Both the position numbers and the translations under genes were made by a program. Below the pieces are notes generated by a model. That model did no database searches. It had not been told where the DNA came from and saw nothing but the letters and a program-made list of their open reading frames with translations. 64,000 bases of DNA, taken from Orbicella franksi (taxonomy: Eukaryota). The stretch is from positions 744,001 to 808,000 of the forward strand of contig OZ116703.1 of the NCBI GenBank assembly GCA_964199315.1, written 5' to 3'. Shown here in pieces: positions 14,001 through 62,298 of this stretch (position 1 is the stretch's first letter; every line of letters starts with the position of its first letter).

Positions 14001-17000
14001 TTTTGTTGATGCTGTTACCGACAATGATGAAAAAGTAGTTTCTTCTAAAAGAAACATACCGAATTCGAGACTAGAGTGCAAAACCCATACCCTATTTGAG
14101 AGCAAAATGGCCAAAATCGCTACTCTATTTCTGACCAAAAAGGCTGAAAAACCATAACCTTTGGGGCCCTACATAAATGTGGAGCCCAGATAAGGGAGTA
14201 ACCACCGGAGAAGGGGGCCCTTACAGTTCAACGAGTAAAACTAATGTTTCAATAACTTCCGTTACCTTTCCATGAGGAAAACATAACGAAACCCATCGTT
14301 CATAGAATATCTTATTCATCTGCTACCGACATCTGATGAATGACAAAAGGCAAGATGAAAAGCTCCAAAAGCCCAAAGGACTTCAAGGTTTCACACATCC
14401 AATTCCGATATATATGGCGCAAACTTTCACAGGGAAGGGGAATTGAAAGAACCTGTTGTTGCTGACTGAAAAGGAATCAAGTACTCTACTGACCTGTCTA
14501 GGACCTGTACCGTTCATGTGGTTCTCTCCATTTAATTCCTCTTGGGGTATACGTGAGGCCTGATAACTAATGTCTTCGGCAAAATGAGTTCGTACACCGG
14601 ATTCCATGGCTTTGAATTAGAAGGAGAAACTCATTATTCTTAAATCCAAGGAACACAGTTTGCATGAACTAACCCAAACACTATAAAAATGGATTATCGC
14701 TTAGCGGTTATTTCTATGATCGTTCTAGGTAAATCTAATCTGTTAGTTAATCGAAATTTGAGACAATTGAAGTTATACTACATGTTGAGTTTTAACAATC
14801 CCTAACCAACTCATATGCAAGGAACCTACCCGCTTGTAAAGGCCATTCATAGATTTTTCTGCAAGAAAAGGAAGTCTTAAAACTCAAAAAAAAAAATGGT
14901 AAAGAATATAAGCTTGAATCTAACAGACAATTGACGAAAAAGTATAAGTCTTTCCATAAAATCAGACGTGCCCATTGTAACAAAACAATGTGGTTAAAAT
15001 TAGGCTAAATACCACACATTTGGAAAACTTATTAATTCTTCTTAGCCTCTCTTTACCTGTTTACGTAACAAAAACAAATAAACTGGTCATTTCACGTTCA
15101 CAGCGCCTAAAAGATGAATTTGAGCCCTGTTGTACAAGTAAACCGGGAATCAGCAGTTTTTTCGCGTACCTGAGCGCGACTGTATCTAATTGTCGAGAGT
15201 CGAGAGTCCAGTGTAAGATGTCGAGAGTCGAGGGTAACATGTCGAGGGTCGAGCGTAACTTTAAAAATATATTAAAATAAAGTGAAAAATAAAAAAAAAA
15301 TAAAAATAAAAATATAGTATATATGAAATAAATTGCTGAAGAAATCAAGACAGAATTTTCTTTCGCCAGCTTTTCTTTTTTTTTTTGAAGTAAAGCGTTG
15401 CGTGACACGGCCAAATGATTTCTCGCTCCTTATAGTCTTGGGCGGTGATACCAACAGCGCTGTCTGTACTGTCAAGCAAACGTAAACTCTTATTAGAGGA
15501 AACATGCAAGCTAATTTTCATTTCTCGATATTCACGCTTATTATCTCCAATTAATTATTATCCAATTAATCAATTATTTAGCCTCCTCTGGTCTAGAGGA
15601 GGTACCTAAGAAATTGTTACTAATTTTTCGTTTTGTTGTAATGGAACATTAAGAATTGAAATCTGCGTGACATCAGTAACAAGGTCTGTCACCGAGTAGT
15701 CACGCGACGTTTAATGACGTTTTTCTTGATGTGTGATTTTTCCCTATTTTTTTAGGAAGGCCATTAAGAATTCGATAAAAAGCAACAGAATGAACGCTAA
15801 AACGGCTACTGTTACACCCTGCTCTAGAGCTTCCAATAAATGCCAAATAAACTAGAGAGAACTGTTTGAAAGTATCCAATGTTATCTTGGGCAGTCCATG
15901 AACAAACAGGAAGGCATTGAAGGCTAAGATAAGATAACAGACATGCCATCCCCTATTCTTTAGTACGTCACATAACCCTATTTCAATCCACTATGTTTAC
16001 GTTAATTTTGTTTGCTTGGCGAGTATTAGAACAAGGCATGAAAACAATGAAAACAAAGATAGTTAGTGGTTTATAATAATGTTCTACAGTCGTAAAGGGA
16101 GATAATAAGCGTGAATATCGAGAAATGAAAATTAGCGTGCATGTTTCCTCTGGTAAGAGTTTACGTTTGCGTGACAGTACAGACAGCGCTGTTGGTATCA
16201 CCGCCCAAGAAACGCAACGCTTTACTCAAAAAAAAGAAAAGCTGGCGAAAGAAAATTCTGTCTTGATTTCTTCAGCAATTTATTTCATGTAAATTGTATT
16301 TTTATTTTTATTTTTATTTTTTATTTTTTATTTTATTTTAATATATTTTTTAAGTTACCCTCGACCCTCGACACGTGACCCTCGACTCTCGACATTTTAC
16401 CCTCGACTCTCGACTCTCCACAATTAGTTACACTCCCTGAGCGCTTTGTTTACAACACATGATGACTGTATGCCATACCGTGGAACCCCGTTAATCCGAT
16501 CACCAAGGGCCACAACAATCTAGCCGTATTAGCGGAGTAGCAGTATTAACGGGGGTTCTTTCACTGAGCTTTTGATCGGGCCAGAATTAAGTGGCCGTAA
16601 TAACGAGGTGGCTGTATGAACGGCTGGCCGTAAAGCAGGGTCCATGGTATTACTATTCCAATTATTTTGCAAACAAAATCCTATTTTCAAATTATCAGAT
16701 TATTACATCTATTTGTAATTGGACGCCTACGCTAATCCCACGTCGAAGTACGTGTACTTTTAGTCCTGCAATGGTTCGTTCTAAATGTTTCCCTACTGTT
16801 TATAACACATGGACAATACTGTTGACATTTTCGCTCCGGTGGAGTTCTTGTCAGTATTGATACGATTAATTAGTAATAATTGGGCCTCGTGTCGTACAAT
16901 TCAGAGAGTAGTTGTGCTTGTATTTTCAAGTCGGCATCGCGCTTTGCGCTCGTCCGATTTAATCACTCCCCCTGTACTCCATAAATTGTACTCCGCAAGG

Positions 17001-17115
17001 TCCCGTTAAAATTACCAGTTAATAACATTTCAAAACATTTTTTTGAAACAAACATTACGTGCTGATACGGAGTACTGACTTACCGTCCCTTTGGATGTCT
17101 TTCTGCCTCGTCCAT
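8072..17115 (-). CDS. Gene 2: ATF7IP-like paralogue with coiled coil and long disordered region, no FN3 domain (about 940 aa)
   Basis: Exons 17115-17084 (MDEAERHPKGR), 14858-14830, 14609-14494, 13732-13559 (ALRRELKQSGAAFQRILSQHMVKMKSKMNQLERENKELRQFACTLDKTLQDVIHRHKL, GC donor) and 10543-8072 (contains the 811-aa ORF). Phases are 2,1,0,0. Exon lengths of 32, 29 and 174 nt equal those of gene 3. Confidence 0.8.
11190..12195 (-). mobile_element. 5'-truncated, degenerate Penelope-like retroelement (RT C-terminus, thumb and GIY-YIG endonuclease) in gene 2 intron 4
   Basis: Translation gives YRCVDD (RYVDD-like), IPFLD, VYRKPTHTDQYLNF..HK.SVVNALLLRA, then CGTVCHIHCEQCDKEYVGET...RLKEH...KFLATESNTFKRRVREAIE...LNRDSGFEL. 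It has in-frame stops and frameshifts. Confidence 0.9.
11198..11238 (-). ncRNA. Degenerate minimal type I hammerhead ribozyme at the PLE 3' end
   Basis: Minus strand reads GTGG CTGACGA A GTTCGG TATAT CCCAAC AAAA TA TC CCAC: stem I GTGG/CCAC, core CUGACGA, stem II, then AAAA in place of GAAA (G12>A), and a palindromic ATAT stem III. Confidence 0.55.
13820..14208. mobile_element. MITE-like interspersed repeat in gene 2 intron 3
   Basis: Ends GGGGGCCCACTCCC ... GGGAGTAACCACCGG (degenerate TIRs), with internal CCCTATT motifs. Noncoding. Confidence 0.5.
15178..16435. mobile_element. Non-autonomous Mutator-like/foldback element with about 340-370 bp TIRs and a 9-bp TSD
   Basis: 15178-~15548 and ~16097-16435 are inverted copies (GACTGTATCTAATTG... 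/ ...CAATTAGTTACACTC). The direct repeat CCTGAGCGC lies at 15169-15177 and 16436-16444. Confidence 0.8.
16476..16649. mobile_element. MITE with TA ends (Tc1/mariner-like)
   Basis: TACCGTGGAACCCCG ... CAGGGTCCATGGTA inverted ends. Confidence 0.6.
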
Positions 17116-18444
17116 GTTAGCGCGTCTGAGTCTAACAAAAAATAACGATGAAAAACTGATTGCCAGGGAAAATGGGGCATATGTCAAGTTTCATTAACGT
17201 GAAGTAACTGGATGAGAGACTGCGCTACCTCCACGGTGATCTAGGAATATAGGGAAAAAATCCCGTCACCTTTTGAAGCACTCAGCATTAGACAGTGAAC
17301 GTAAAGTACTGAAGCGTATAACGATCTCTATCAGGGGCTTTTCTGTTTGGAACAATGCTGCCAGAAACTGGCGTTTTGTACCAGCGTTTTCTTTTTTAAT
17401 TTAACGACAGCAATTAAGGTGCGTGTTCTTCAGAGATGAATCAGTTGCCATGAAAACTTCGTGACAACGCGAGTATATTGGGCTTAAAAGTTGTTAAATT
17501 GAGACACACAGAACTCTGACACACTGTGCCGTTTTTATTCACCTGAAATCGAAGTTTCATATTTTGAGACTTTGCTGCTGATGATTTGAGCGTAATTTAT
17601 GAGCGCTCACTCAGTTACAACATAACGACCAGCTGCAAATTCATACAACTTGGAAGGCTAAATAATTACATCTTTTGAGGGAATGAATTTAAGGATTCGA
17701 AAAGGTTTTGAGATCAGTTTTCTTCTTTTATTATCATTGAAATTCCTTTGATAAAATAAAGCATAAGACGTGGTTGAAAGTTTCGTTGAGTCAAAGTGTT
17801 TGAATACTGCTCGGATTCACTGGCTCTTAATTTCATTTTAGCAAAACAACAATATTTATGTCTCTTTCAATTCCTTTTCAAAATTACAAGTTAGCACCAC
17901 AGCGCTTTCAAATAAACTGTTTATCGTTTGCTTTACTAAAAGGATTCCTCCACCATTTCACACGTACGCAAACATCTTGAATAACAAATTGTTTATGGTC
18001 CAAGCAGGTGATAATCTAATGCGATGCTATATTATTCAGCCTAAATTTTTTTTATCTCGTAACAACTGCCAAGCGTTCTCCGATATCACACGGACACCCA
18101 CACATGCTCCATATCACTCCTCCCCCGTCCCCAGAGTAAAGTAACAATCATGGAGAACACAAGGGACGAATAAAGACCCATGGATGTTAGCCAAGGTGAC
18201 TTAAACATCAGTGGTGGTTCCGTTTTACGGAAGAGCAATAAATATTCATATCTGAACTGAGAGAATCCAGACATTATTTAACTGAAACAAATTTAGGTAA
18301 ACTGGTTACACACGTTATTATGGCACTTGATCCATAGGGCATCTTGAAGAATTCAGCCTAAATATTTCAGTTAAGTTTGTACTGAGCAATTTTCCTCAAT
18401 CTTGGATATTTTAAAATAAAATTGTCTTGGAGGAACTTGCAAGA

Positions 18445-18474
<30 letters not shown>
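18445..18474. repeat. (AAT)n microsatellite
   Basis: About 10 perfect AAT units. Confidence 0.95.
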
Positions 18475-18475
<1 letters not shown>

Positions 18476-21400
18476 GGCAACGGCTAATGGCGGTAAAGTG
18501 GTAAAGTTAACGAGATGGACGTTTAAGGGGAAATGTTAGTTGTTATGGTGACGAATGAAAGTGAAAAACTTGGAAATGGACTTGCAAATTGAAACGAAAA
18601 GCAACGTTTCTCAATGGGAATTGCCCTCAAGAAATAAAATTAAACCTGCAACTTTGACGATATGAGCAGTAGTAAATTGTGAGTGTTTTCTTTGTAAGAT
18701 GTCATATTTAGGCACATACTTTTTCGCCTGTCTTCATTTCTAAGAAAATATTTTGGATATTCTATAATCTTAAAACGCAAAGTGATTAAATGTTTTGACA
18801 GGTAAAAAAAAACAACCAAGTTATTAATATCTGAAGCATTTCTAAATTAACGTTTCAGACAAGTTTCGTTTACCGACATGTAACACAAATATTGAACATT
18901 TTACCAAATCCTTTTAACTAAAGGAACTATTTTTGTCAAATATACTGCCTTTTTTTCCGTTTTTCCAATCAAAAGAATCCTTAAAAGAAATGTCTGCTAA
19001 ACAGAATATAGGTAATTATAACGAAACAAGGACCGCGATGTCTTTGAGTTCTCGAAGTGTTTTCAGTTGACTATGTTGCTCTATTCCTGTTGTCGTGACT
19101 AGGCATTGTAATTATTTGGTTTTGATTTTACGACACTAGATTGAAATCCTCTTCTTTTGTGGTAATTATTAGCGGTTAAATGATAGATATAATTCTTTTA
19201 CCGAATTTGCTCGTCTTGAAGTAGCCAAGCAACCCAGATCTCGCCGACTCGCGTTTAAGTGAAGATGACAAGTTTTCAAAGACATTTATTACAAGCTAAC
19301 AATAGAGGTTCTGTGAACGTTAGAATACAATGTTTGGCCGCCTGTTTACTCGAACAATTGAGAGAAAATTTTATTTTTTCGCATTTTTCCTTTTGTTCTC
19401 ACTTTAAAGAAAAGGGTAAAATCCGGAAGCAAAATGTTAGCTTGAAACAAATAACTATTGATTGCGAAAAAATGATCAGCTTTGTTCAGCATCTACTCAC
19501 TCGAATTAATCCAGTATAGCGTTTGTGCATCTGAATTTTGAGACTAGGCACTAAAATGGTAAGCCGACCAACAGGCCATGAACGACTGGCAAGGAAATTC
19601 TGAACAGCTTCAGAATCAACAGAGCTCACAAGACACTAAGAGCGCATGACTGGAGTGTCTGAACAATCGACATAATTTCTTCTGAATTCAGAGGTGATAC
19701 CTCAGTTCGCAATGTTTCATCACGGCGGCCATTTCAAAAGTATAGTGCTGCCAGGCTTTCAGATCTAAATTTGGCGTCTAAAAACCTTTAACGATATTCC
19801 TATGCAATTCTCAATGTCTTGCTGTCAAAAGCGTGTGTATTCCTCTTTGTTATTGACCTCTGAACGAAACCCTTCAGAATTTCCTTGCAAGATCCAGGGA
19901 CTTGATAAGTCCATTTTCAAGCTATAAAAGCCGACTTGCTCCTTTTTAGTAAAATACGTAAAATAAACTATTGGTTGGTACCTCGTTAATTTTAAAATCT
20001 TGTGCGGTGTAACGGAAATCTTTAGTCGCTTTTATAACACAGACGCGAGGTAGACTTGCCGACAGAGAAAACATTTTCAATCAGCTAAACAAACCAAATA
20101 AAATTAAATTAATTTAGCCAAGGGATAATCCCTACTAACTTTGTTATCGTGCCACACAAATGAGAGGTGAATAAGCACATTTTAAAGTAACAATTGCTCA
20201 CTTGATCGCATTGAACTAAAAGCAAACTGAAGCGTGGTTAAATCTGTATGCACAGGGCTTCCTGTTTATTCATCCTTCTTTTTTTCGTTTGTAATCCTGA
20301 AGAATCCTCCGATTTGTTTAAGCAAACATGAACGCTTTTTTCCTGACCACCAACTCATTGATAATGCAAATTTACCCGGAGCCGACCGTGTTTGATAACT
20401 GTGCAAAGTCCGCTCACTATTTTGTTCGTATCAGTTGAGAATTTGCGCTCTTGATGTCTCGCCGCATATAATCTACCGACATGTTTTTTTAGTACCAACC
20501 TCTCTTCTATGGTGAATTTGTTCAACACAAACTTTTTGTTGATTGTAGTAACTCAGCGGTACAGTTGGATAGATCGACAGAGAGCGAGCCCTTGTGGCTG
20601 TAAACTGACTTGCTAGACCAAAACAACCGCAAAGAGAATAGTGATCGTAAGAAGTTTTAAGAGGACATTTAGGTTTCTAAGGAACGGGCGCTAATAAAAA
20701 ATACAGATATCTCAAATCCTACATACACTAAAATTAGGAAGCGAAGTCTAATTCAACAAGCTCACGTTATTGACAGGTTTCAGAACACTTATTTATAAAC
20801 CATACTGAAATAGTGCTCCGGTTATGCGGTAAAACTCTTCATCACAAAAATACTTTTTTGCTTACGAAAGCCACAGAAATGAAACTGAAATATGGTGGCT
20901 TATTCTGCGTGGATAAGGTGTGGAGAAACAATTTTAACGTAATAATAAAATTTCCCTTGATTTCGATATCCTTTCAGCTGTACTTGACATCAAAACTAAG
21001 TAAAATCTGCATTTCAATAAAATGTATCAGGCTTTCTGGAAGGCACTCATACAAAACCTCGACAAAGTGAACAAGTAAGAAACTATTGCGCTAAACACAG
21101 CTAGCTATTAAGCCGCTTTCCTCAATCGTACCGCTAGGCAACGACTTTTTCCTTGAAAACTTGCATACAAAAAATCGCTCTCGACTTGCCGCCGCCGTGA
21201 ATCAAGATAATTTCGATTAATTTGAGGAGAACAATAACGTACGTTTTAAAATATAACGTTTGTACAAGGAAACCTAGACTAAAGTGACTTTTCCTGGCTG
21301 TGAATGCAGTGAAAATCCCCGGGAATCAATCTAGACAAAAAGATGTTGATTTAAGATTCTACGGAAACAAATTGTGTTAATGCGAGATAGCATCTGCCTG

Positions 21401-46397: not shown

Positions 46398-49300
46398 ATG
46401 AGGATACGTTTCCTTGTCTCTGTGATAGTTTGCGTTGGTTTATCGGTTGATTCAGGTAAGACTCATTATTGCATTCATACCGAAATCTTGTCAAAATTTT
46501 ATGGTTGGTATTCAGTGCATTTTTTATTTAACGAGCGTGCTTTGTATATGAGACGGTAGATAGCCAACGACGCGCGTGGCGCCTCGTTGGCTATAATCAT
46601 CTCATATCCAACAAGCACGAGTGGAATAATTGTTCAGTATTAAAAACGCGCCCAAAATATAGAAAACTAATCTAAAATAAAAATAAAAAACGCCCCAAAA
46701 AATTACGTGTACGCTTACCTCATTTGTAGAGCATGGTATAATGGCTCATGACCTACGATGGCTGAGCCAATGAAAACTCTCGAATTGCATTATCCAATGA
46801 TCCAGTTTTTATATATATTAAATTTATGGGTTGTACATCAGTGATCAAAACATACTCTCCGGTGATTTTTTTTTTTGTCCCTTGTTTGCTTGGAAAAATA
46901 TAAGAGAGACATGATGTTGATGACGGTTGGAAATTAGAAGAATATTTAGCGCTCAGCGCTAGAGAACCTATGCCAGAACGCAGCAGCAAGTGTGCTAATG
47001 TGTCATGTATTTTTTTGTTACTCACAGCTCCGCTCGATGTTCGTGTCGCAAAAGGTAAGATATCACCTATCTATGCTTTAATGTCTGGGGACCAAATCGA
47101 ATAGACTGTTTTTCTTTCCGTAGAACGTTGATTGAAATTTTTTTTTTTCATCAACATTCTCAGAGGGCTATCCACTGTCGTGCATTTTCTTCATGACTCA
47201 TCATTCTTTATTTATTCTTTGAATAATTTATTTGTTACTTAGAGCTCTCGTCAAGACTCCATAGAAGGCAGATTGCAAATCAAGGTGAGATTAAACGGGT
47301 GGTTAATCATGCGAGGGGAGGGAGAGAACCTGTTCACACGCTAGTGTTAAGTTCACACTATGACTCACCACATAGAAAAAAAGACTGAAGAGTGATAGCT
47401 TAGGGCCGAGTCCCAGCAAACACAAATAAATTCAGCGCTTTTCGTTCCACCTATTCACTTACATCTCTGACTGGTCCGACTTCGGCTTCTAATTGAACCT
47501 GGAATAAACATAAACCTTAGCGTTTCTCTCAGCGTTCCGTTTTACCATATTTGCTTCTTACGACCACTCGGATTCCAGAATAGAACCGGCAAGAAGCAAA
47601 TTTACTTCACGAATCAGTAGTGCCACTAGTTCCGCGGGTCGCGTTTGCTACGTTGATGAATAATCACATTTAGATTTTTAATAAAATTATTTCACTTTTC
47701 AGGATACCTTGGTTACCCAGGATACTCGACATCCTCATCGCAATACACTGCAAACCAAAATGGAGCGTCACAAGTAGGCTCCATACCTTCACGTAAGTAC
47801 ATGATTTAAACCGGGCGGATTATAAGTTAGTGGTAACTTTAAAGATAACATAGGTTTTCGAGAAGTTTCCAAAAGATCTTCTATTGGTTTTTGATTTGTT
47901 TTTTGCTTGTGATATTTTGGACCTCAGCAACGAATTTTGAATTTCCAATAAACCAAGCAATACTTACTGAGAATTAAAGACAAACAAACAACTTTGCATA
48001 CTTAAACAAGATAGATTTTGAAAGAATGAAAGATGCGAATGCAGCCATGACACTACTGGAAAAATGACCTGAAAAAATTTCAGGCTCTGAACGGGATTCG
48101 AACCCACGACCTTTACGTTACCGGTGTAGTGCTCTACCAACTGAGCTATCAAAGCCACATGAGAGCGGTCGTGTGTGAGTTCGGCCCTACATGTTCAGTG
48201 GACGTAATACTCGGCTCAAGCATATGAATTCCATATAGGGCCGAACTCACACACGACCGCTCTCATGTGGCTTTGATAGCTCAGATGGTAGAGCATTGCA
48301 ACGGTAACGCGAAGGTCGTGGGTTCGAATCCCGTTCAGAGCCTGAAATTTTTTCAGCTCATTTTTCCAGTAGTGTCATGGCTGCATTCCCATCTTTCATT
48401 CTTTCATTTAATTGCTACTGTTGGACATCTATTACCAAGATAGATTTTACGAACTAAACTTTTGCCTGCAACACCACGCAACTCAGAAAACTATTATAAC
48501 CATAACAGTCTATGAGAGTCCATCTAATGGGGGGCTATATTGACAAATCTCTTTGCCTTGTTCAAAACAGAAGCCTCGAATTCAGCTAGTTGGAACAGCA
48601 GTCCCCAAGCAACAGTTGCATCAACTACAACAACGGAAAGTGGACAACAGCAACTAGCAACCCAAAATGGTGCTCAAGTTGTCCCTGCGCAAGCCAACTA
48701 TTCTTCAGCCCAACCATCTTTGGCATCTGCTGACACAACATTCAGCAACGACAGTTCTTCCACACTAGAGTTTACCTCACAGCAATCATCAGTGAATTCT
48801 TATAACTCTACAGCTCCATCTTCACAAAATTCGACCGTAAATAACGGCTATCCGGTATATTACGTGTCCAATTATGAAGAGCCCAATTTGCAACAAACAA
48901 CTTCGCAGCCTATGTCAAATGCAACAGCTAATTCATCTGTTCCATCTCAAGCATCCGAAAGTAATGCAACTGAAAATGCAAATAATAACAGCTATCCAGT
49001 ATTCTATATAACCAGTCCTCCTAACGAAAAACAACAAACACCTGTTTTCAGCAACAGCTCTGCACCGCCTACTACGTCACCAGAAAGCCCATCAAGAAAT
49101 AATGGTACCTACAATTATCCAATTTATTACGTTAGCAATTATAACGAGGAAGCGCAGCAGACACCAATAACTACCACCGTTAATAGCACCAATACGTTTT
49201 CGAATACCTCGAAAGGAAATAACACGTTGAATGAACAAGCCTACAGCTATCCTGTGTATAACGTAGGCGGCCCGAAATCAGAGCAGGAAAGCACAAGCCA

Positions 49301-52191
49301 AGAATCGAAAACCAAATTTATAAATTCGCCTGTTTCTTACGAAATAATCAACAGTTCATCTGTTTCTCAAAGTAATGCATCTCAACCAAATGTTGGCAGC
49401 TCCTCCTCTGCTACAACGCTATCTAACAATACTCAGCCATCAGCAATAAGTGGTAGCTATGCCTCTTCACCCGAAGCAGCAGCTCCGTCTACCTCACAAA
49501 CAACGTCTGTGCCGGTATCACAGCCAGCAACCACTTCTTACAACTATCCTTCGGCCCCTACCTTGTACCAGATGACCAATTTAACAACTTCACCATCCAC
49601 GCCACAGCAAACATCTAACTATTACGGTTCTCCTGCAGGCCCTCCGTCTCCTGCTACATACCAAGCCTATGGAGCACCCTCGACTTCTGCATACCCAGCA
49701 CCTGCGCCTGCTCCACAACCAGCACCCAGTTATTATAGCTACCCTGCTAACCAAGCATCTGCTGCTCCTTCACCATCACCTTCACCTGCACAATCCCCTG
49801 CACAGCCCGTAGTAGCCAGCTCTTATCCTTCAACAGCTCTTTCCCCAGCTCCGACTCCATCTCCAGCGTCAGCGCCAGCACCAGCACCAGCACCACCTCC
49901 AGCTTCGGAACCTAATCGAATCTCTGGTGTATCCTCTTCTCCTCCATTCCCACCAGCATCAGCATCTTCCTCCTCTCCTGGAACTCAATCCCCGGCTAAC
50001 ACCCAAGCCTCTAGTTCTGTTGCCAAGCCATCGCCCCCATCATTGCCAGTTTTAAATTCGGAATACGAAAATGCGTCGTACATCATTGCAACGCCTCCAG
50101 ATAAAGACACAGTCCTCTTTCTCCCCTCTCCCTCGCATCCTTTCTCATCAGAAACGACCCAAGCTGAAAACTCTACTATCGTGAGTAATTCTACTCTCGC
50201 AGTGACAAACGCTTCAGCTGAAAGTAGTTCATCTCCTACAATAAATGCAACATCTCTAGTTAATGCCACTGCTCCTGAAATTACAGTACCTGCAAATGCT
50301 ACAAGTATCAAAGTCGAATCCTCAAACAGTACAATACCCGCTTCACAAGAAACAAATTCCTCCGTTGCAGTTATTCCCCAAAACATCTCTTTCCCTGGCT
50401 TGGGCTGGCTTGAGAAAAACACTACTTCTTTAAGCAACATGACTTCCCTGACTAATTCTTCATTGGAAACACCCTCTTCCACCCCTGTCCCGAAAAATCC
50501 TATCAGCTCAACGACTCCAGCACCACAGCCACCGTCAGCAACAACTGCACCAATAATCATGGTTTCACCTTTTGCTCCATCATTGGACAATACCAGTCCA
50601 GCTCCTGTAGTGCCTTCCCATTCAAATGGCACGTTAAACAATCCGCCTTCAGGATCACAGTTGAATTCTCCTCCGATAGTCATGACAAAGCCTCCTCCAT
50701 CACACCTGTCTCCGACTCCTCCACCGGCACCTGCGCCTGTCGCTCATCCTGTTCTGGTAACGACAAAACCTCCCTCAGCTGGTTTACATACCACTACCAA
50801 ACCTAAGCCGAAAGAGTGGGGCTTTGGAGACAAGTATCTAGGTAAGTAAAATCGCACATTTGTAAACTTACAAGTTTGGCACATATGTTAGACGTCACCC
50901 ATTTCTGTAACTTTCTGTAGTAATGACTCTGTACATCCCGCCCATTCCGCGTGCCCACTTATTTAAAATGATTTGTCTTGAGCAGTCCTGTTAATGCAAC
51001 ATTTTCTTTTGTTCTTTTCCCTGTCCTTTACAAAGCTTTTGTTTGAATTGTATTGTTTATCGTAAACTCTTGCAATGAGGTAGTCTTAAAAAATCGAAAA
51101 TCTGTTCATTGTGCGATGCCTGTAAGACACCTGCATCATAGAAAATACTATACAGTGTGTGTCAAATGACAGGTTAAAGTAAAAGTTAACTAACGTAATG
51201 AACCCATAGGCTGACTGCTTGTTACTCGTTTGTAACAGTTTTACCCAATTTAGTGTTAAATCTGAACATATTGATAATTTTCTCATGTATGGAACTGTTA
51301 TTTCTTGCAGCCTCTCAAAATCAACGAGCTCGTCACAGGAACGTCATATTTGATGGCATCGCGGGTGACAGTCAGTGTAAGTATTTAACCAGATCAGCTA
51401 AATAACACAGTTTCTAAACTCAAAATGTCCTGATCAGTTTTATTATCAATGAAGACAGAAACTGGGCAACCTTTAACGCGAACAAAGTTAGCCAGAGTTT
51501 CAAGAGCTTCTGGTAATTGCTACTAAGCATCTAGCATCTGTCTTCCTCGTGCCTCGTGGCACATAGGGCCTTTACAGAGGTCCTCCACTTTTCTCGGTCT
51601 GCTGCGATCGTTCTCGTTTCCTCCCATGAACTCCACCCCGCCTCTTTCCGTTCCCTTTCTAGTGTTCGTCTACACGTTGTCTTGGGCCTTCCTCATCTCC
51701 TTTTCCCTTGTGACACCCAGCTTATTGCGATGTTACAATCATTATTGCACGCGATCTGGCCTCAGGATGTGACCAATCAGTTTTCATCTACGATACATCA
51801 CTTCCTTGCTCACCGGTTTCATGCTCGCTCTTGCCAACAGTTCCTCACTACTGACATGATATAACCACTAAATTTGATACTAACTCATGAAAATGGTCGA
51901 TGCCCATTTTGGTTGAACATTGGTCCTCTTAATAAATCATAAGATTTCTGGCTAATATTATAGAAATGGATTTCAAAACGCGCTTACTATATAAATGCTG
52001 AATTGCTGAACCTTAAGTTGCCCTCTCAGACTTCACGGTGATAATTCTTTTACTATTATTTTTCTTGAAAATAACAATAATTCTTGCCTGTTTTCGTCTC
52101 CACAGCTTACAGTAATTATCAAGTTTTAAGTCAACAAGAAGTATTCTTTCCAAAACATGGAAGAAAAAGAAGAAGCCAACCTGCCACTTAA
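46398..52191 (+). CDS. Gene 4: secreted mucin-like S/T/P/N-rich protein with a C-terminal ARHRNV module (about 879 aa)
   Basis: Exons 46398-46455 (signal peptide MRIRFLVSVIVCVGLSVDS), 47028-47054, 47243-47284, 47703-47792, 48571-50841 (the 769-aa ORF), 51311-51376 and 52106-52191. All introns are phase 1 and GT-AG. The protein has many N-x-S/T sequons and APAPAP runs, and ends FFPKHGRKRRSQPAT. Confidence 0.82.
48020..48435. mobile_element. tRNA-derived element, family B: 170-bp inverted arms with tRNA-like heads (48083-48156 minus, 48269-48342 plus) and a 13-bp TSD, in gene 4 intron 4
   Basis: Arms are 48020-48189 and 48236-48405. The acceptor stem is 8 bp (GGCTTTGA/TCAGAGCC) and the loop carries GGT. 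CAAGATAGATTTT lies at 48007-48019 and 48436-48448. Confidence 0.8.
51524..51862 (-). mobile_element. 3' end of an RTE-clade LINE in gene 4 intron 6
   Basis: Minus strand translates as WVSQGKRR*GRPKTTCRRTLERERKEAGWSSWEETRTIAADREKWRTSVKALCATRHEEDR, a typical RTE ORF terminus, followed by a short tandem tail (AGATGCT)2. Confidence 0.8.
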
Positions 52192-53786
52192 ATCCTATTT
52201 TTCAAACACGCTTGATCATTTATATTCAGGTCAATGCGGGGATCGTCTCGTTCCTTGTGAGCCATTACTTTCTAAAGCCACAGAATGTATATTGATCTTT
52301 TGTAAATAGTTAATGTAACTGCAAATTATCGAGTTCAAACGTATTTTGAAGACATATAACCTTGCAGTTGAAACATTTTAACATTGTAACAGAATTTCAC
52401 AATGTTGGCTTTCCCTGTTTAAAGCAAGAAACCCTAAAGTGTGACTACGTTAATACTATCCAATCAAAAGCTAAGAAAAGCCATCGTCGGCATCTGATTG
52501 GATAGTCTACACGCATGAAAGAATTCATTAAAATTAGTCACATTTTTGGGCTCCTTGATGTAATATTTTGTTCCTGGCATCATGGATCGAAGAGGTTCAT
52601 TTCAGTCAATACTATCTTAAACTCTATGAAATCGTGAGGCTACCGTAGATGGAATTTTCAGATGATGTACATTTGAACAGTGGGTGATACGATGGTATCA
52701 AATAACGAGTTTATTTCAACAATATAGACTGTAAAAATGTTCAGAAATTGTGAAAGTGGCTTGTTGAAAATGGCGAGGTTTCAACTACAAAAACATCAGT
52801 ACACATGGCGCCTGGTGGTACAGTTATTTGTCTGGTGAACGCAACATTTGTATGAGAGCAGCAGTGTCTATTTATTCGACGTTATTTACGTTAGAACAAA
52901 ACCAAATAAATGTCATATTTTCTTCATGTTTGTCGTATAATTTCGCTTGGTACTTTTTCCGATAGAGCAGAAACTTCCTGACCCTTTCTACCCGGGACTG
53001 AATTCAAAGTCTGTAAACGTAAAGTCTTGTACACCTCACTTAATACTGTAGTATAGGCTCAATATCCCGTCCCAGAGAGCTCAGTCATTTAATTTCATCT
53101 AAACACAAATACCCCAGGCTACATGGATAGCCCAAATGAGAAAATACTGGTCCTTACATTCGGAACATTGATGTTTTAAAAGATGGACCAAAATGAATCA
53201 TTTATGATAAAATGGAACACACTACAAATAACTAACAAAATAAGGTTGTTTATTCATCTCCCACTGTCATAAATTCGATATATACAGATTTCAGATTTGA
53301 TGCGCTTGTTAAAGAGTCCATTGCTAGAACCTCAGATTAGTGGAGTCGCAACTTCTTCCTTAATGTTTTCCTTAAATAAAAAAAATAGGACAAGAATTAA
53401 AGCCAACTATAAATCCACATGATTTCTTACGAATCATATACACCTGCGCGCTGGCTAGGTTAGAGGGGACAGTCGTGCGTCAGCGGTTTCTCTTAAAAGA
53501 AACGTGTCTTACAGATTCTGACTGAAGATTACTGGGCACTAATCCATTAATGTACTCTGTTGTTTTGGCTAATCTCTTAGTAAAGTTCCCGATTTTTTTA
53601 TTAACCAATGGAAAAACACCACGAGTGCTCAAGAGTACTCCGAAAGATGCCACTTCATGATAAGACACAAACTATTGGCCTTATTCACGTCTTAAAAACA
53701 GAGATCTTCATCATCTGGTTCTAGTTCCGATGGCTGAAAAACGTACTTAATCTTTTAAGTATTTGTACAATGTATAGGCTGTATTC

Positions 53787-56700
53787 TTACTCTGTCTTCA
53801 TCTCCTGCTCTTCAGCTGATCTCTTTTTGTGATGAATTAAGATGTGCTGCCGTGTGAGCACGGGGCTACTGGAACCTACAACAAAGTTACAGCGACAAAA
53901 TCAAGTTGACACGTCAGTAAAAGAAACAACAACTTCTGAAATAACAAGCAGACAAACAACAACAACTTTCATTAAAATGCAGGACTGTCCACAAATGTTG
54001 GAGAGCTCGTGTGATAGGTTTTAACTAATGGTAGCCAAACGAACTCCGAGAATTAATCAGACAAGACAACTCCAAGGCCATAACATTTGGGATTCCAGAC
54101 TGGGTTTTCTGTTCTGCTTAAAAATTGCTGCCACTCGCTCGTACGTTTTGGTGCCTAGATGTCGTCAATGATAGTTAATTATGTTGACGGTGAGCTGTCT
54201 CGACAAGTACCACACTCTAAGATAAGAAGTTGTTTTAAGTAATTCTGGGTTACCAGACATTTCCAATTGGAAAGTTCAATTCCGTTAGGCTTGTTTTTTC
54301 CATTAGGATATTTTTCGAGTTTACTGCACTTTACAGAACTGTGTTCTTACCGTAGGGATCTCCACCAACGGAATCAAAATAAACATTTCTGTGTCTTGCA
54401 GCATAATTTAACCTGGCTAGAAAATAGAGTAACCAATTAATATTTTAAATTATTAGTAAATATAATGCAAGTAGTCATAGCGAATCCCACCAATCCGAAG
54501 GCTGGAAATTCATTGTATACATTATCTTACCCAACTTGTGCCACAGTCATGCAGTAAGGTAATTGTCAATGTTAGATTAGTGTAAGTTTCCTGCTCTGAT
54601 CAATGTGTTGCTGAGTTCATCCTGCATGTGGTTAATCATTTACTTACCAATGCTATCTCGTTTCGCGGCTGGTTGGACGGTTAGTGGACTGGATTGCACG
54701 GCTGGGTAATATTGACTGATGGCACCAGCTTAAAAGGAATGAATTTTTTGAAACATTAGCAAAATGGTTTTCCAAGCCAATGCCATATCCATTGTTTTCT
54801 ACATGGCAATATAATGTCATTGATCTAACGTATACCAGCAGGATCATCGTCTGTGGTTACTTGCTTAAACATTTTATGTCATTTGTCATTTTTTAGCTCT
54901 GAATAGGGAACAACTCCGAAACTTACCGATTGCCGCGTTTGTTGTACCTTCACCTATCCTCACCAAATCAAATGACACACAGGGCCTAGATGTCATGACT
55001 AGTAGCTACTTAAAAATCACTGTATAGAATTATGTCACGCTATTGTTAGAAAGGGAGTGCAAGTTTTGTCATATCCGAATACCAAAAAGCTATTTTTTAA
55101 AATTACTAGAGTAAGCGTTTGACCAACAGTGTAGTCCACGTGCAAATGTGAAAAAAGATGTGAGAAAAGGCATAAAAAAGTCATCTACATGAAGGTATCG
55201 CTCAGTTGCTTGTATCTGAATGGTCGAGCACAACGATTCCACAACTTTCACTATTCAGTTCAGACCTGAAACCGATCAGGCTTTTCTTGTTGATCAACAG
55301 AATTATACATTTTGTTTGTTTACTCACGTGCAGACACTAATTCAGCTTGTGGAACTGATCTTCGCTTCTTGTGAGGGACAGCAATATGTGATCGGGTAAG
55401 CACGGGACTGCTGTGACCTATTTTAATAAAGTAAACGAAAAATGCCAGTTTGAGAAGCGTTGGATAAAACTGTTAAGATAGTGTATTACGTACTATACCC
55501 TTTCCCGGGGGAAGACTTCCTTATGAAAAGGTCGGGGATGCACGTCGTCTCGCTTAGGGGTATAGATCAAGGATTCTGGTCTCACTGAGGGTATTCATGA
55601 CGAAAAACCACTATTTTAGCTGTCAAAGTATTTTTAGCGTGCACTCAACGATAAATGATAAAAACACACTCTTATTTCCGTTTCTAGGCTCGATTTCCGC
55701 CAGTCTCTCGAGTCCACTCTATTAACGCGGGCTCCTGTCCTGAACAGCGGCCTGTAATCGAGGCTTTCCCTTTTAACTGGTGTCTTTTAGGGATCAAATA
55801 AAGCTCGAGCCACACCTATGGTACAATGTGGCACAATGTGGCGCAATGAGGCACAGTGTGGCGCAATGTGGTAAAATGTGGCACAATGTGGCGCAATGTG
55901 GTACAATGTGGCGCAATGTGACACAGTGTTGCGCAGTGTGCCAAAATGTGGTACAATGTGGAACAGGGTGGCACAATGTGGCGCAATGTCGCACAATGTG
56001 GCATAATGTGGCACAATGTGGCACAATGCGGCACAATGTAGCGCAATGAGGCACAGTGTGGCGCAATGTGGTACAATGTGGCACAATGTGGCGCAATGTG
56101 GCACAATGTGGTACAATGTGGCACAATGTGGCACAGTGTGGCGCAATGTGGCACAATGTGGTACAATGTGGCACAATGTGGCACAATGTTGCGCAATGTG
56201 GCACAATGTGGCACAATGTGGCACAATGTGGTACGATGTGGCACAATGTGGCACAATGTGGTACGATGTGGCACAATGTGGTACAATGTGACGCAATGTG
56301 GTACAATGTGGCGCAATGTGGCACAGTGGGGCGCAATGTGGCACAATTTGGTACAATGTGATGCAGGGTGGCACAATGTGGCGCAATGTGGCACAATGTG
56401 GTAGAATGTGGCGCAATGTGGTACAATGTGGCGCAATGTGGTACAATGTGGTACAATGTGGCGCAATGTGGCACAGTGGGGCGCAATGTGGCACAATGTG
56501 GCGCAATGTGGCACAATTTGGTACAATGTGATGCAGGGTGGCACAATGTGGCGCAATGTGGCACAATGTGGCATAATGTGGTACAATGTGGCACAATGTG
56601 ACGCAATGTGGCGCAATGTGGCGCAGTGTGGCACAATGTGGCACAATGTGGCGCAATGAGGCACAGTGTGGCGCAATGTGGTACAATGTGGCGCAATGAG

Positions 56701-59579
56701 GCACAGTGTGGCGCAATTTGGCACAATGTGGTGCAATTTGGCACAATGTGGTACAATGTGGCGTAATGTGGCACAATGTGGCGCAATGTGGCACAATATG
56801 GTACAATGTGGCACAATTTTGCACAATGTTGCTTAATGAGGCACAGTGTGGCGCAATGAGGCACAGTGGGGCGCAATGTGGTACAATGTGGCGCAATGTG
56901 GCGCAATTTTGTGCATTATGTCACAATTTGACGAAATGTGGTGCAATGTGGGGTTTAATTCAAATTTTCCGACGGACATCCCCGACCTTTTCATATGAGA
57001 GTTTCCCCGGGACTCTTTCCTACCATACGGATCTCCTCCGACCATGTCATAATAAACATTACGGTGTCTGGCGGCATGATTCAACTGCTCTGTGAAGACA
57101 AAAGTAACACAAACAGCATCAGAAAGAATGACTTACATAAAATCTACTTGTAACCTTCGGAAAATTATTTCTAGTAATATGTACACTGTTAAAAAAAAAT
57201 ATTTATAAGTAAAATAACTGAAAAAAAAAACTATTTGAGGGCTTCCTTATCTGGAACGAGAACTTGACGAATTGTAAAATTTGGTTTTAAATATTTTTTA
57301 GTTGTTTTTTTTTCCATACGAATCGTAAGGCTGATTTTAAAAATGAAGAAAAGGATGGCTCGTATATAGCAATCAGTTCTCTGAATTATGCTCTCTATCT
57401 ATAATGGTGTAATAACATTGATCACAAAAAAAAGAAACAATAGCCACAAGTAGGCATACCAATGGTATATCTTTTATCGTCATCTGGATGTCTTCCTGCA
57501 ATAACCTGCTCTTCAAAGAAAGCTGACGGGAGCTGACTTCCAGCGACATTTTGAGCTGAACAAAGAAAACAAATTAGTAAGGCTTATCTGCAAATTATGT
57601 GCTTTTGTTATAGCAGTTTTGAGAATGGATTTTGCCAACTGCATATACGTTTTCGAAGTGTTAAATCAATAAGCTAACAAGAAAGTACAAAGAAAATTTT
57701 TGTGCGTTATTTTCGCTCAATTCATGGAAGCTCAATACACTACCTATCTACCTAACACCCTATTTCCCTCAAAACCTAACTACCTACTATACTCACGTGA
57801 TTCGGCCGGCATAAGAGATCTCCTCTTCTTGTGAGGGACAGCAATATGTGAACGCGAAAGCACGGGACTGCTGTGACCTATTTCACGGGGTGTAAAAACA
57901 AGCTATTTTAGCACAGTAATATACACACCATATCGGCTTGACCTGTGAATATATGTTGGCATGACGTATTTTCCTGTTAAGCAACCTGTCCAATTTCACT
58001 TCCCCATTCTTCCTCCATCCCACTCCTTCCCCACCCGTATTGTTCACTTTTGTTATCTTCTGTTTTATCTTTTGACTAGCCATCTATTTTGACCTATTCT
58101 ATGATTGGCTATCTAAGCAAAGCATAATGCAGCCAGTCAAGAATTTGAAATTTATATTTTTCTCACCATAAGGGTCGCCTCCAACGGTGTCGAAATAAAC
58201 GTTACGGTGTCTGGCAGCATGGTTAAGCTGTTCTGTGAGAATAAAATTACAACACCGCAAAAAAATTAAAATATATAAACATTTACTTAAAAAGCAGGGT
58301 GTGGTTAGTAAATGTTTGAAGGAAGCGAACTAATAATCACAACAGTGAGACATACCAATTGTGTATCTCTTGTCATCGTCAGGATGTCGTCCTGTTGTGA
58401 TTTGCTCCTCAAAGAAAGCTGAAGGCAGCGGATTTCCAACAGTTTGGGCTGAAAAGCAAATACACAAACACAAATTGACGATCATTATTCCCTCGTAATT
58501 CAAATGTTTCCGAATGACTTGATTGGTTTATGTAGGTGATATTGGCGAGAGACCCATTTTCGTCACTACGAGCGCATATACAGAGTAGGGACTACATAGG
58601 AGGACTGCATATGTATGTGCATAGTGTTTTCTTGTGGCACATGGTAGCCATATTAATGTACCAAAACAACGCAATTCGGCTCTCCTTTGGAAAATGAAAT
58701 TAGGGTTTTTTTGGAAACTTTTGCTGTTTCTTAAGAGCAGAACCATAGCTGAGGCTTAAACCGTATGTATAAAGGACTTCTGCCATTACATCAAAAAACC
58801 GAGCTATGCATTACTTTTCTTCCCTTTCTTTTAAGCAGATACTGCGAGATTCGAACGACTCATCTAAGTGAATGCACTTTTTCAAAGTGCTTACTTACCA
58901 GTATCAACAGGATCAGGGATTTCACTCTTCTTAAATGGATTCATTCCATTTTGTCCCGCGTATGGTATTTCCCAACCTTAAGAGAGAAACATCAAACGTG
59001 ACTCTTGTAGTCTGCAAAGCCAGCCAATTACTCGAAAGACTGTTTGGCGTCGTTTTCCAATGGAACAAACAGTTTACTAATGGTAAGTCACACTTAAGCC
59101 CTTTTTGGTGGTTATGTAACATAACAATTCTACATACCAACAGGCAATAACGGTGTAAATCAGTGACGAATTCTGGCATGGGTAAGGTACAAATCGGTGT
59201 GCTTCAAACCCTTCCCCATGTTTGATTTAACTTTATGAATCGGTAAAGGAATATAGAGTTAAACTAACCTAACATTTGCCTTCTACACTAGCGTCCGAAT
59301 TTAATCTCTCGCTCTGTTTGAGGTAAAGATAACGGCTTTTGTGTGTCGCTATTACTACCAACCTCGCTCAGCGATTCAGTCGCCTGAGTGGGGTTCCCCT
59401 TGAACACAACACAATGAACTCGGCCAGGAGTCGAACCCACTCTTTTGGTTCCTCTGGCTGTACACCGGGTTCAAAATCAGTTTAGCAAACAAACTATTAA
59501 TAATTGCCTTTTTTCAAATACCTTTGCATAAGACAACGGCTCCACACAAGATACTGATTATGGGTATCAAACTTCCCAT
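53787..59579 (-). CDS. Gene 5: secreted prohormone-like precursor with three 41-aa repeated peptides (about 287 aa)
   Basis: Exons 59579-59522 (signal MGSLIPIISILCGAVVLCK), 58976-58899, 58448-58356, 58232-58167, 57877-57797, 57555-57460, 57089-57024, 55417-55328, 54728-54648, 54416-54351 and 53875-53787. All are phase 1, GT-AG and in frame (864 nt). Repeat copies differ mainly at third codon positions. A possible extra exon lies at 54998-54927. Confidence 0.85.
55505..57011. mobile_element. hAT-type MITE (8-bp TSD) expanded by an internal satellite, in gene 5 intron 7
   Basis: TIRs are CCGGGGGAAGACTTCCTTATGAAAAGGTCGGGGATG ... CATCCCCGACCTTTTCATATGAGAGTTTCCCCGGG. Flanks are ACCCTTTC (55497-55504) and ACTCTTTC (57012-57019). 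Confidence 0.75.
55818..56950. repeat. 10-bp tandem minisatellite (GGCACAATGT)n, about 113 units
   Basis: Variants include GGCGCAATGT, GGTACAATGT and GGCACAGTGT. A higher-order block of about 160 bp is repeated around 56300-56570. Confidence 0.97.
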
Positions 59580-59950
59580 TTTGGCGAACCTGTCGACAAG
59601 GATTAATTGAGCAAAATTAAGGCGACATCCGATAGAAAATCGGGCAATTTCAGGTTTTAGTGGACAAAAATCTGGTACCAGAATAATTTTAAGTATTTTA
59701 CAGTCATTTTTAGATTTTTTTTAAAGCTAAATACATAAATAATTGCCTGAAATAACACCGAAAACAATGTCCAATGGGAACGAGAGAAAATACATTTCAA
59801 AGTTCAGAGAACTTGTGCAAACACAGGCAAAATTTCATCATCAGTTTCATTTCACCAGTACTCTTAAGTGTTTCATGTGAAGTTCAACATTCGTTTTTGA
59901 CGTTTGGCGTTGCTAGAAATGATTTTTTTTTTGAGAAGATACTTGAAACA

Positions 59951-60273: not shown

Positions 60274-62298
60274 ATTGAAAAGAGTCGTACAGAAGTTTGC
60301 AATACGATGTAAATAATCTTGGTACTAGGTTTTTGTCTACTTGTTACTCGAACCTCTGGTGGATTCCATCTTAAACGTTCCTCAAATTAAATATTTGGAA
60401 CACATATATATAATAACTTTTACATAATAACCTGCAATAACTCCGCCTTCTTCACAGGAAATTATCCCTAATACATTGAATCATCCAAACTCAGTCCAGT
60501 GCAAAAAAAAAAACATTCAGTAATCAGCTAAATCGTTCCTTGTGCAATGTCCATAAAAGTTAGCTTGAATCAACTTTAATTTCTATAAGCTTGACTCGAG
60601 CAATCGTTTAGTTAATTGCCAAAAAATCCTGCTAATAAAAACATAAATTATTTAACATCCTTGGTAACCTAACACTAATTCAACTCCTAATCGGAAAGAA
60701 ATAGAACGTAAGCTAGCTTTCTCGGAGGCCCTCCTCCTCCATAAGTTATTTTCGTCACAGAAGAGTTCTCCCGCGCTTAAGACGTTCAGATGTTCACGTG
60801 TATTGATATTTTGTGCTATGTTGTTTTTACTTGTAAAACCAAAGAGACACCAGGCAAACAGGTTGTCTTTTCATCGTGTTGTCACTGGTATTGCCAAGGA
60901 AAATCACAGCCTAAACTTTGAAGACTTCGGGCTGAATACCGAAATTTTTTCGTGCAACAAATGTTTCATATATTTGCCCATTTTCTTTCCTCTGGCACTG
61001 AAAACCTGTGAAACGAAGCTACAATTTTTCTATATTTATCACCACTCGTTGAATGATATATTTTGTCCTGAAATATTTTAAACTCGAAGTTAATCTAATC
61101 GTGCTGTTAGATTTTAAGATTTTCCAGTTTTTATATTAAGAGGAAAGTCATCAGAGTTTAAGTGCACAAGTGTGTCGCTTTTACTCTGTCTAGGTAAATG
61201 ACCACACAAATTTTGCTCTGCCTAGATAAGTAACCACAGAATTAGACGAAAATATTGCCATTTATAGCTTCATTAGTATCAGTTGATTTTGGTCCTATCT
61301 AGATATATGCTGTTATCTGAGATTTAAGAAGAGACCAAACAAAGGAACGAGCTATTCTTGGCTAAAACCAAACACAGTCCAATATCCTGTGTATTTATTT
61401 CATAATAGCAATGTTTCTAAATTTCTGACAGTCTGGTCAACATGTCTTGAATCTAAATTAAGAAACAGTTTAATTCTACCTTCTCGCTAGCCCAGATGGA
61501 AAAGCTAATCTAATTTTTTCGCTAGTTACTCACCAAATGTTCTCTTCTCCAAGCTAAAATCAGAGATTTGAAATTAATTTTGCGTTGTGTTTCACCCGAG
61601 AGTTAAATTATCCACAGCGCTGCTGCTATCCGTTGATCAACCGTATCTTCGTTGGTTTTCATCATGGTGGCTTGCCACAAGCAAGTTTTGTGATTGGTCG
61701 TTGTCTTATTCTTCTGACAAACAGGTATGACTTTTACTTATCACGCCTGATGGGTCAATAATATCAATATCCTTTTTCGAAAATGACGTGTTTATGTGTT
61801 TAGAATATCATTACCACAGAAACCGTTTAAAGCGGGTTTGTGTTTATTGATCACGAGAATGACTTTCCAGAGTTGCTGGTAACAGAGAACTTTCATTGCT
61901 TGATAGTTTATCAACGGTCGAAGTCAGATTTTTAGTTATGTTTAGTTATGGCACTCTGTACGAAGTCACACTGTCCCAACTGGCCAATCCTGAGCCAGGT
62001 CCCGGGCCTCAAGGTGGAAAACAAACGGTAACATCATACGCTGTCTAGTTGCTTCAAAGTATTGATGTCAATTCACAGTCTCGGTTGGTGTGTCTACTGT
62101 GATATCCCAATGACTCAGGCGTCCGTCTTGAAACGGAAGGAAAGTGTCAACTTTTTTAAAATTTCATAAACCATTGGTTAATGGCTATGTCACCTCAGAC
62201 TATGTTTTATATTCATTTACGTGCTAGTTTCACGTTCTTTCGGCATTTATACTTTTTGCATACGTTGCACGTTTTCCGAAAATTTTCGGAAATTTTAA

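Follow-up and report, generated by a model that had tools for sequence, protein, structure and literature searches.

Cnidarian multi-copy neuropeptide preprohormones, among them those of the GLWamides, RFamides and HIRamides, combine a signal peptide with similar peptide copies that are set between acidic spacers and bounded by basic sites (Koch & Grimmelikhuijzen 2020, PMC7523074; Thiel et al. 2024, PMC11087051). Their peptides are ~4-15 amino acids (aa) long, and acidic or X-Pro N-terminal sites are common (PMC11087051). Here we analyse a 64,000-nucleotide (nt) stretch of the stony coral Orbicella franksi (contig OZ116703.1, positions 744,001 to 808,000; hereafter the window, in whose numbering positions are given), in which an earlier note, made from the letters of the DNA, had proposed an unannotated polyprotein precursor of three 41-aa peptides at 53787-59579. 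The gene found there resembles the described preprohormones in its signal peptide, similar peptide copies, acidic spacers and basic sites, in a conservation focused on the peptides, and in the Gly-Lys/Arg amidation signals of its sea anemone and octocoral relatives. It differs from them in the length of its peptides, which is 35-43 aa across the family, in the canonical Lys-Arg (KR) that precedes them, in having only two or three copies, and in the lack of an amidation signal in stony corals. The gene probably encodes a secretory propeptide precursor that is processed by convertases and belongs to a new family found across Cnidaria, with signalling peptides as its most likely products.

Raw poly-A RNA sequencing (RNA-seq) reads (run X24) and transcript contigs (run X9), the expression source being poly-A libraries from whole colonies, were aligned to 53700-59650. 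They reveal a transcribed and spliced minus-strand gene of 13 exons that encodes a protein of 297 aa. The three 41-aa peptides are encoded exactly as the earlier note had written them, each divided among three small exons. Anchoring on GT-AG sites gives an open reading frame (ORF) in which all introns are phase 1. Around single exons, stop-free genomic readings reach 99 aa at most. A 1088-nt X9 transcript contig and the X24 reads show all predicted joints (59522>58976, 58899>58448, 58356>58232, 58167>57877, 57797>57555, 57460>57089, 57024>55417, 55328>54728, 54648>54416 and 54351>53875), with 20-52 reads per joint, for example 36 at 59522>58976 and 39 at 55328>54728, and with CT..AC ends that correspond to GT..AG on the minus strand. 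With all of these joints present in RNA, the eleven exons proposed within 53787-59579 were borne out; the first, non-coding exon and the last, tail-encoding exon lie outside that interval. The exons, and one intron with an insert, are as follows.

61534..61642, minus strand: non-coding first exon, 5' untranslated region (UTR); donor GTGAGT after 61534; start approximate; from RNA reads
59522..59589, minus strand: 10 nt of 5' UTR, ATG (59579-59577) and predicted signal peptide; RNA joint
58899..58976, minus strand: N-terminal pro-region exon with the IPYAGQN motif and FKK-SEIP; RNA joints
58356..58448, minus strand: unit 1 spacer exon, with acidic pro-region PLPSAFFEEQITTGRHPDDD, KR and YTI; peptide 1 starts at 58365
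58167..58232, minus strand: unit 1 core exon, 66 nt, phase 1 on both sides, encoding EQLNHAARHRNVYFDTVGGDPY
57797..57877, minus strand: unit 1 C-terminal exon, with the end of peptide 1 (57831), KKRR (57830-57819) and the first part of spacer 2
57460..57555, minus strand: unit 2 spacer exon, …FFEEQVIAGRHPDDD-KR-YTI
57024..57089, minus strand: unit 2 core exon, 66 nt; RNA joints
55328..55417, minus strand: unit 2 C-terminal exon, with the end of peptide 2 (55371), KKRR and spacer; joins 54728 directly
54648..54728, minus strand: unit 3 spacer exon, type B, …QYYPAVQSSPLTVQPAA-KR-DSI
54351..54416, minus strand: unit 3 core exon, 66 nt, encoding ARLNYAARHRNVYFDSVGGDPY
53791..53875, minus strand: unit 3 C-terminal exon, with the end of peptide 3 (53829), KKR and SAEEQEMKTE
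53236..53370, minus strand: last exon, with KTLRKKLRLH, stop at 53339-53337 and 3' UTR; AATAAA at 53254-53249; transcript end at ~53236-53258
55418..57023, minus strand: intron with a transposon-like insert and a minisatellite, outside the coding unit

The ends of the gene had been placed wrongly, as the RNA shows an extra 3' exon and a non-coding 5' exon. The TAA at 53789-53787, previously taken as the stop, was rejected when loose read ends revealed onward splicing: 24 X24 reads and an X9 contig leave the genome at 53790 and resume at 53369, the TAA is part of the splice donor GTAAGA, and the exon ends at 53791 and is spliced to 53370. The last exon contributes KTLRKKLRLH before the true stop, and 29 reads are joined at 53370. 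At the other end, 47 X24 reads and an X9 contig extend from 59590 into letters mapping at 61535-61564, the orthologous transcripts L002-L006 have 5' UTRs that map to 61642-61532, and an in-frame stop lies upstream of the ATG in the 5' UTR. A 27-nt in-frame GT-AG exon between units 2 and 3 (54953-54927, flanked by gatag and gtaagt) was dropped because the RNA joint 55328>54728 skips it. Three independent full-length transcript-derived orthologues (P0074, P0075 and P0058) have the same architecture. P0074, which is 297 aa long and comes from a close relative, is collinear from the first to the last residue with ~94% identity, a value estimated from per-region identities, and it likewise lacks the 27-nt exon and has the tail. 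Public coral RNA runs contain 0.14-0.37 of the sampled words of the stretch, of which the exons make up 0.15; run X22 contains no reads of this gene.

Two further observations concern the ends of the transcript. An in-frame stop lies inside the last-intron donor in both the coral (53785-53790, GTAAGA) and Nematostella (locus L011, ~15500-15510, GTGAGT). Retention of this intron would yield a protein that lacks only the conserved basic tail; the shared stop could be a coincidence or could point to a conserved alternative isoform. One orthologous contig (L001) has a 5' part that maps to 60389-60684 with 87% identity and not to the first exon at 61642-61534, and the same contig reads past the acceptor at 59590; it represents either an alternative start or a molecule that was only partly spliced.

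The protein consists of a signal sequence, a pro-region containing IPYAGQN and FKK-SEIP, three units, a short acidic stretch and a basic tail. Hydropathy and inspection by eye predict a signal peptide made of MGS and a 15-residue hydrophobic core, with a mean Kyte-Doolittle value of 2.79 for residues 4-18. In each unit, a 41-aa peptide lies between an acidic spacer that ends in KR and a basic run, KKRR in the first two units and KKR in the third; the unit corresponds to a triplet of exons: a spacer exon that ends with KR and three residues, the 66-nt core exon and a C-terminal exon, with lengths of 93/66/81, 96/66/90 and 81/66/85 nt. The secretory polyprotein that the earlier note had described, with KR and KKR(R) around peptides from a triplicated exon triplet, is thus upheld by the RNA-confirmed model, and the protein is Cys-free after the signal peptide. 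The three copies follow the consensus xxI-x-x-LN-x-AARHRNVY-x-D-x-VGGDPYG-x-SS-x-VL-S/T-R-x-HI… over ~41 aa. At pH 7 their net charges are +0.2, +0.2 and +1.1, and they are hydrophilic, with a grand average of hydropathy (GRAVY) of ~ -0.5. AlphaFold2, run on an alignment of 46 copies, predicts no fold (predicted local distance difference test, pLDDT, 59), as would be expected of a free peptide rather than a domain. The model contains one low-confidence helix, from just before KR to …LNHAAR, followed by coil, and on this prediction the module is a flexible peptide, not a domain. In a language-model comparison, the neighbours are nearly all multi-copy neuropeptide precursors (tachykinin, allatostatin, PBAN, pro-TRH and FMRFamide-related), with weak scores of ~0.8 that a third of shuffled proteins also reach.

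Purifying selection acts far more strongly on the module than it does on the spacers. Units 1 and 2 are separated by 17.5 synonymous and 4.5 non-synonymous differences, which correspond to a synonymous divergence (dS) of 1.06, a non-synonymous divergence (dN) of 0.043 and an omega of 0.04. Unit 3 is saturated at synonymous sites against the others, with a dN of 0.20. No intron of the gene could be aligned with any other, and this, together with the synonymous divergence, indicates that the duplications are old and that the peptide sequence has been held, in agreement with the purifying selection first read from the mostly synonymous differences between the copies. Against the orthologues P0074, P0075 and P0058, omega was 0.010, 0.046 and 0.052 for peptide codons but 0.118, 0.170 and 0.224 for spacer codons, and spacer codons overall evolve 3-12 times faster than peptide codons.

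To trace the family, a profile of 23 positions, built from an alignment of the three core exons and a related exon of the window, was searched against 1.84 billion representatives, and the members were named through cluster look-ups and two more searches; the near-identical orthologues P0074 and P0058 also served as queries. The profile search returned 56 matches at E<=0.001, 29 of them at E<=1e-10, and all named matches are cnidarian. Members were found in stony corals (Pocillopora, Montipora, Oculina and Desmophyllum), sea anemones (Nematostella LOC116606013, Exaiptasia and Actinia), octocorals (Dendronephthya and Xenia), hydrozoans (Hydractinia and Hydra LOC100204652) and scyphozoans (Rhopilema and Sanderia). 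Every named relative, including the orthologues in other coral genomes, is annotated as 'uncharacterized' or 'hypothetical'. A Pfam scan of the window exons and ten family members gave no match reaching the gathering score and none at E<=1, Secretogranin_V included, and searches across 8.4 million papers and preprints returned no relevant mention of the peptides, the gene identifiers or the predicted amides. A precomputed assignment to PF27337 (YorF) is labelled only 'faint' and was not taken. The family, which spans corals, sea anemones, soft corals and jellyfish, is therefore undescribed, without a name, a Pfam model or a paper. The novelty that the earlier note had suggested holds in this sense, as does the absence of a match to a known structural family, although the family is pan-cnidarian and not an oddity of one lineage.

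The core exon is the most conserved part of the family. The motif N-x-A-A-R-H-R-N-V-Y-x-D-x-x-G-G-D is present in all three window copies, and across 46 copies N, A and R are invariant while A, R, H, N, V, Y, D, G and D reach a conservation of 90% or more. The anthozoan proteins are short, with 173-297 aa and two or three units. Medusozoan members are 300-580 aa long and Gln/Pro-rich, carry one or two modules, and have additional conserved pieces (PYLGxDL, AKAYAEGYKAAI and RSRMPYLGQNLDALGIVRA) and, in the long forms, repeated [KR]-S-x-I-P motifs; the Hydra member lacks the N-terminal half of the module. The IPYAGQN motif is kept among coral orthologues and is similar to MPYLGQNLD, found in the long forms of medusozoans. 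Two types of unit, A (GGRHPxDDKR-YTI…) and B (KR-D-x-IA-x-LNY…), are common to sea anemones and robust-clade corals, and their split therefore predates the divergence of anemones and corals. The basic tail is conserved as TLKKKLRL in orthologues. In four family members (P0002, P0003, P0073 and P0076) the TL-K/R-KKLRL tail is followed by a Cys cluster (…CKGCCC, …NCCCVNGKC, …CSKCCC and …CHGCCC), which is missing in the window protein.

The presumed processing sites are conserved together with the module. A dibasic pair occurs at the same position before the module in 34/34 anthozoan copies, and a basic cluster follows it in all 48 copies examined, mostly 38-43 residues past the presumed start. 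The classical signal for amidation is a Gly with basic residues after it, and amidation is common but not obligatory in multi-copy peptide precursors. Such a Gly precedes the basic residues in 10/10 actiniarian and octocoral copies (e.g. …SSR-GKR, …HRH-GR and …LTF-GRKKR) but in none of 24 scleractinian copies, this coral included. The description of the peptides as non-amidated is therefore correct for stony corals, where it is a derived feature, and does not extend to sea anemones and octocorals. In the processing that we propose, the signal peptide would be removed in the endoplasmic reticulum, subtilisin-like proprotein convertases would cut after KR and after the multibasic sites, and a carboxypeptidase would trim the basic residues. 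Three peptides, two of type A and one of type B, would then be secreted. The homologous peptides of sea anemones and octocorals would in addition be C-terminally amidated, a signal whose Gly stony corals would have lost. Once released, the peptides would most likely act as an extracellular signal, neuropeptide- or hormone-like, on a receptor.

Several observations weigh against this account, and some of them fit a longer product. The dibasic pair precedes the module in only 4/14 medusozoan long-form copies. The module also forms the C-terminus of a large mucin-like protein encoded by the convergent neighbouring gene described below, where it is apparently uncut on its N-terminal side, and so it can act within a large protein. 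In type-A units, GGRHPxDD just before KR is strongly conserved across hexacorals, to the same degree as the module. Finally, an LC-MS/MS (liquid chromatography-tandem mass spectrometry) table lists at least two peptides of the Nematostella homologue NVEC200_005559 that are 62-63 aa long, start at the signal-peptide cut, end exactly before GKR, and are uncut between DDKR and YTI in all entries listed (Thiel et al. 2024, PMC11087051, Supplementary file 1). The outer ends of these forms, at the signal cut and before GKR, speak for our account. The entries stand in the 'Poor' identification sheet, which tells against our account and equally against the long forms; the Nematostella member is absent from the curated 33 proneuropeptides, and among the supplements only the mass-spectrometry table contains it (PMC11087051).

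An alternative, then, is that only the multibasic furin-type sites (H-K-K-R-R before S and the like) are cut and that KR is left intact, which would give N-extended products of ~75-95 aa in the coral and 62-63 aa in Nematostella that include the acidic GGRHPxDDKR. Besides the uncut Nematostella forms and the conserved GGRHPxDD, this is consistent with the low-confidence AlphaFold2 helix, which spans the KR site, and with the acidic residues at positions P3-P5 of that site, since such residues disfavour furin-type cleavage. Type-B and octocoral units, however, keep KR or KK without GGRHP, leaving the dibasic pair as the common denominator of all 34 anthozoan copies, and the spacer codons change several times faster than those of the peptides. 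We therefore regard the longer product as unlikely.

A second alternative concerns function. The module may not be a signal, but a binding or assembly element of a secreted mucus or matrix, of which the precursor delivers several copies and to which the adjacent mucin-like gene is related. This neighbour is convergent with the precursor gene, with the two 3' ends ~310 base pairs (bp) apart, and includes the following exons.

48540..50841, plus strand: large Ser/Thr/Pro-rich (mucin-like) exon, ending …KEWGFGDKYL; RNA contigs
51311..51376, plus strand: 66-nt exon, phase 1 on both sides, with the diverged module core ASQNQRARHRNVIFDGIAGDSQ; joints 50839>51309 and 51376>52106
52106..52926, plus strand: last exon, with the C-terminal part of the module SYSNYQVLSQQEVFFPKH, GRKRR, SQPAT, stop and 3' UTR

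The intron positions of the neighbour's module are the same as those of the precursor's, and the C-termini of its coral orthologues (P0043, P0044 and P0048) are among the profile matches. The pairing is kept from corals to Nematostella. There, locus L011 has a spacer exon that stops in phase 1 after KR and three residues, the 66-nt core exon, and separate C-terminal and tail exons, together with a convergent neighbour (16338-19903, minus strand) that carries a diverged module in a 66-nt exon. This pairing, the C-terminal module of the mucin-like protein and the long, Gln/Pro-rich medusozoan members with their repeated [KR]-S-x-I-P motifs are what a matrix role would lead one to expect. It is set against strictly conserved flanking convertase sites and Gly amidation signals in two anthozoan orders, which are typical of released peptides and not of matrix proteins, and against the absence of both a predicted AlphaFold2 fold and a Pfam structural domain. 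On balance a matrix element is improbable.

The Nematostella neighbour is only 193 aa long and ends …EISFPEN, without the GRKRR seen in corals; the mucin-like expansion and the C-terminal cleavage or amidation signal may therefore be coral-specific. Two local features of the coral neighbour are of a different nature. Within the mucin-like exon, a 30-nt island (49873-49903) has a much higher read depth, with loose read ends on both sides, and is a short stretch common to some abundant unrelated transcript. Just upstream of that exon, 47964-48443 contains mirrored ORFs (MALIAQ-L/M-VEH…GSNPVQSLKFFQ) on both strands, and joints of the 'opposite strands' kind occur at 48233/48437 where the RNA word depth is very high; the region looks like a head-to-head pair of tRNA-like short interspersed nuclear elements (SINEs). 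In the precursor gene itself, the insert in the intron at 55418-57023 has ~43-bp inverted repeats flanking a 10-bp minisatellite (ggcacaatgt, ~110 copies, 55820-56940). Contigs of run X2 join both insert flanks with different inner letters, which indicates further genomic copies of the element, and 55491-55689 within the insert shows a very high word depth.

Antimicrobial or His-based metal-binding effector peptides, which the earlier note had offered among its options, are very unlikely: although the layout of signal peptide, anionic pro-region, KR and C-terminal peptide is like that of arminin and damicornin precursors, and the coral peptides carry 4-5 His, the peptides here are near-neutral, hydrophilic, Cys-free and multi-copy rather than amphipathic-cationic, a clear positive charge and amphipathicity conserved in homologues were not found (homologue net charges range from -0.1 to +4.1), and the His count varies from 0 to 5 among homologues while conservation falls on N, A, R, H, R, N, V, Y, D, G and D, so that neither cationic antimicrobial nor His-based metal-binding roles rest on conserved properties.

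Two further classes of secretory protein offer partial likenesses to the signalling-peptide precursor that we favour. Bilaterian long peptide hormones of 30-46 aa (CRH/DH44, calcitonin/DH31 and PTH types) are ligands of secretin-class receptors. They share with the present peptides the length class, an N-terminal helical propensity, C-terminal amidation in some lineages and release by convertases, an analogy only, and differ in that no sequence similarity connects them (all named profile matches being cnidarian) and in that the precursor here is multi-copy. Proteins of the granin, 7B2 and proSAAS type are likewise acidic, disordered and Cys-poor with many basic cleavage sites, and the PY-x-GQ…KK motif followed by S-x-I-P may resemble the 7B2 C-terminal peptide; they differ in that the ten scanned family members gave no Pfam match at E<=1, to Secretogranin_V or otherwise.

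Almost all that is known of peptide signalling in cnidarians concerns very short amidated peptides, and the majority of cnidarian peptide receptors are orphan. The family described here supplies synthetic-peptide candidates for receptor screens, and the Nematostella gene (LOC116606013 / NVEC200_005559) is a target for knock-out. It also provides a clear case of one two-exon peptide module common to a prohormone-like gene and a mucin-like gene. More tentatively, the family may represent an ancient cnidarian peptide-hormone system that predates the split between anthozoans and medusozoans, with long (35-43 aa), ancestrally amidated ligands, types A and B in each precursor, orphan receptors, and a paired mucin-like gene that reuses the module. 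If this is true, it would be the first family of long signalling peptides that all major cnidarian classes share, and would furnish a candidate ligand set for those cnidarian receptors that short amidated peptides have failed to activate.

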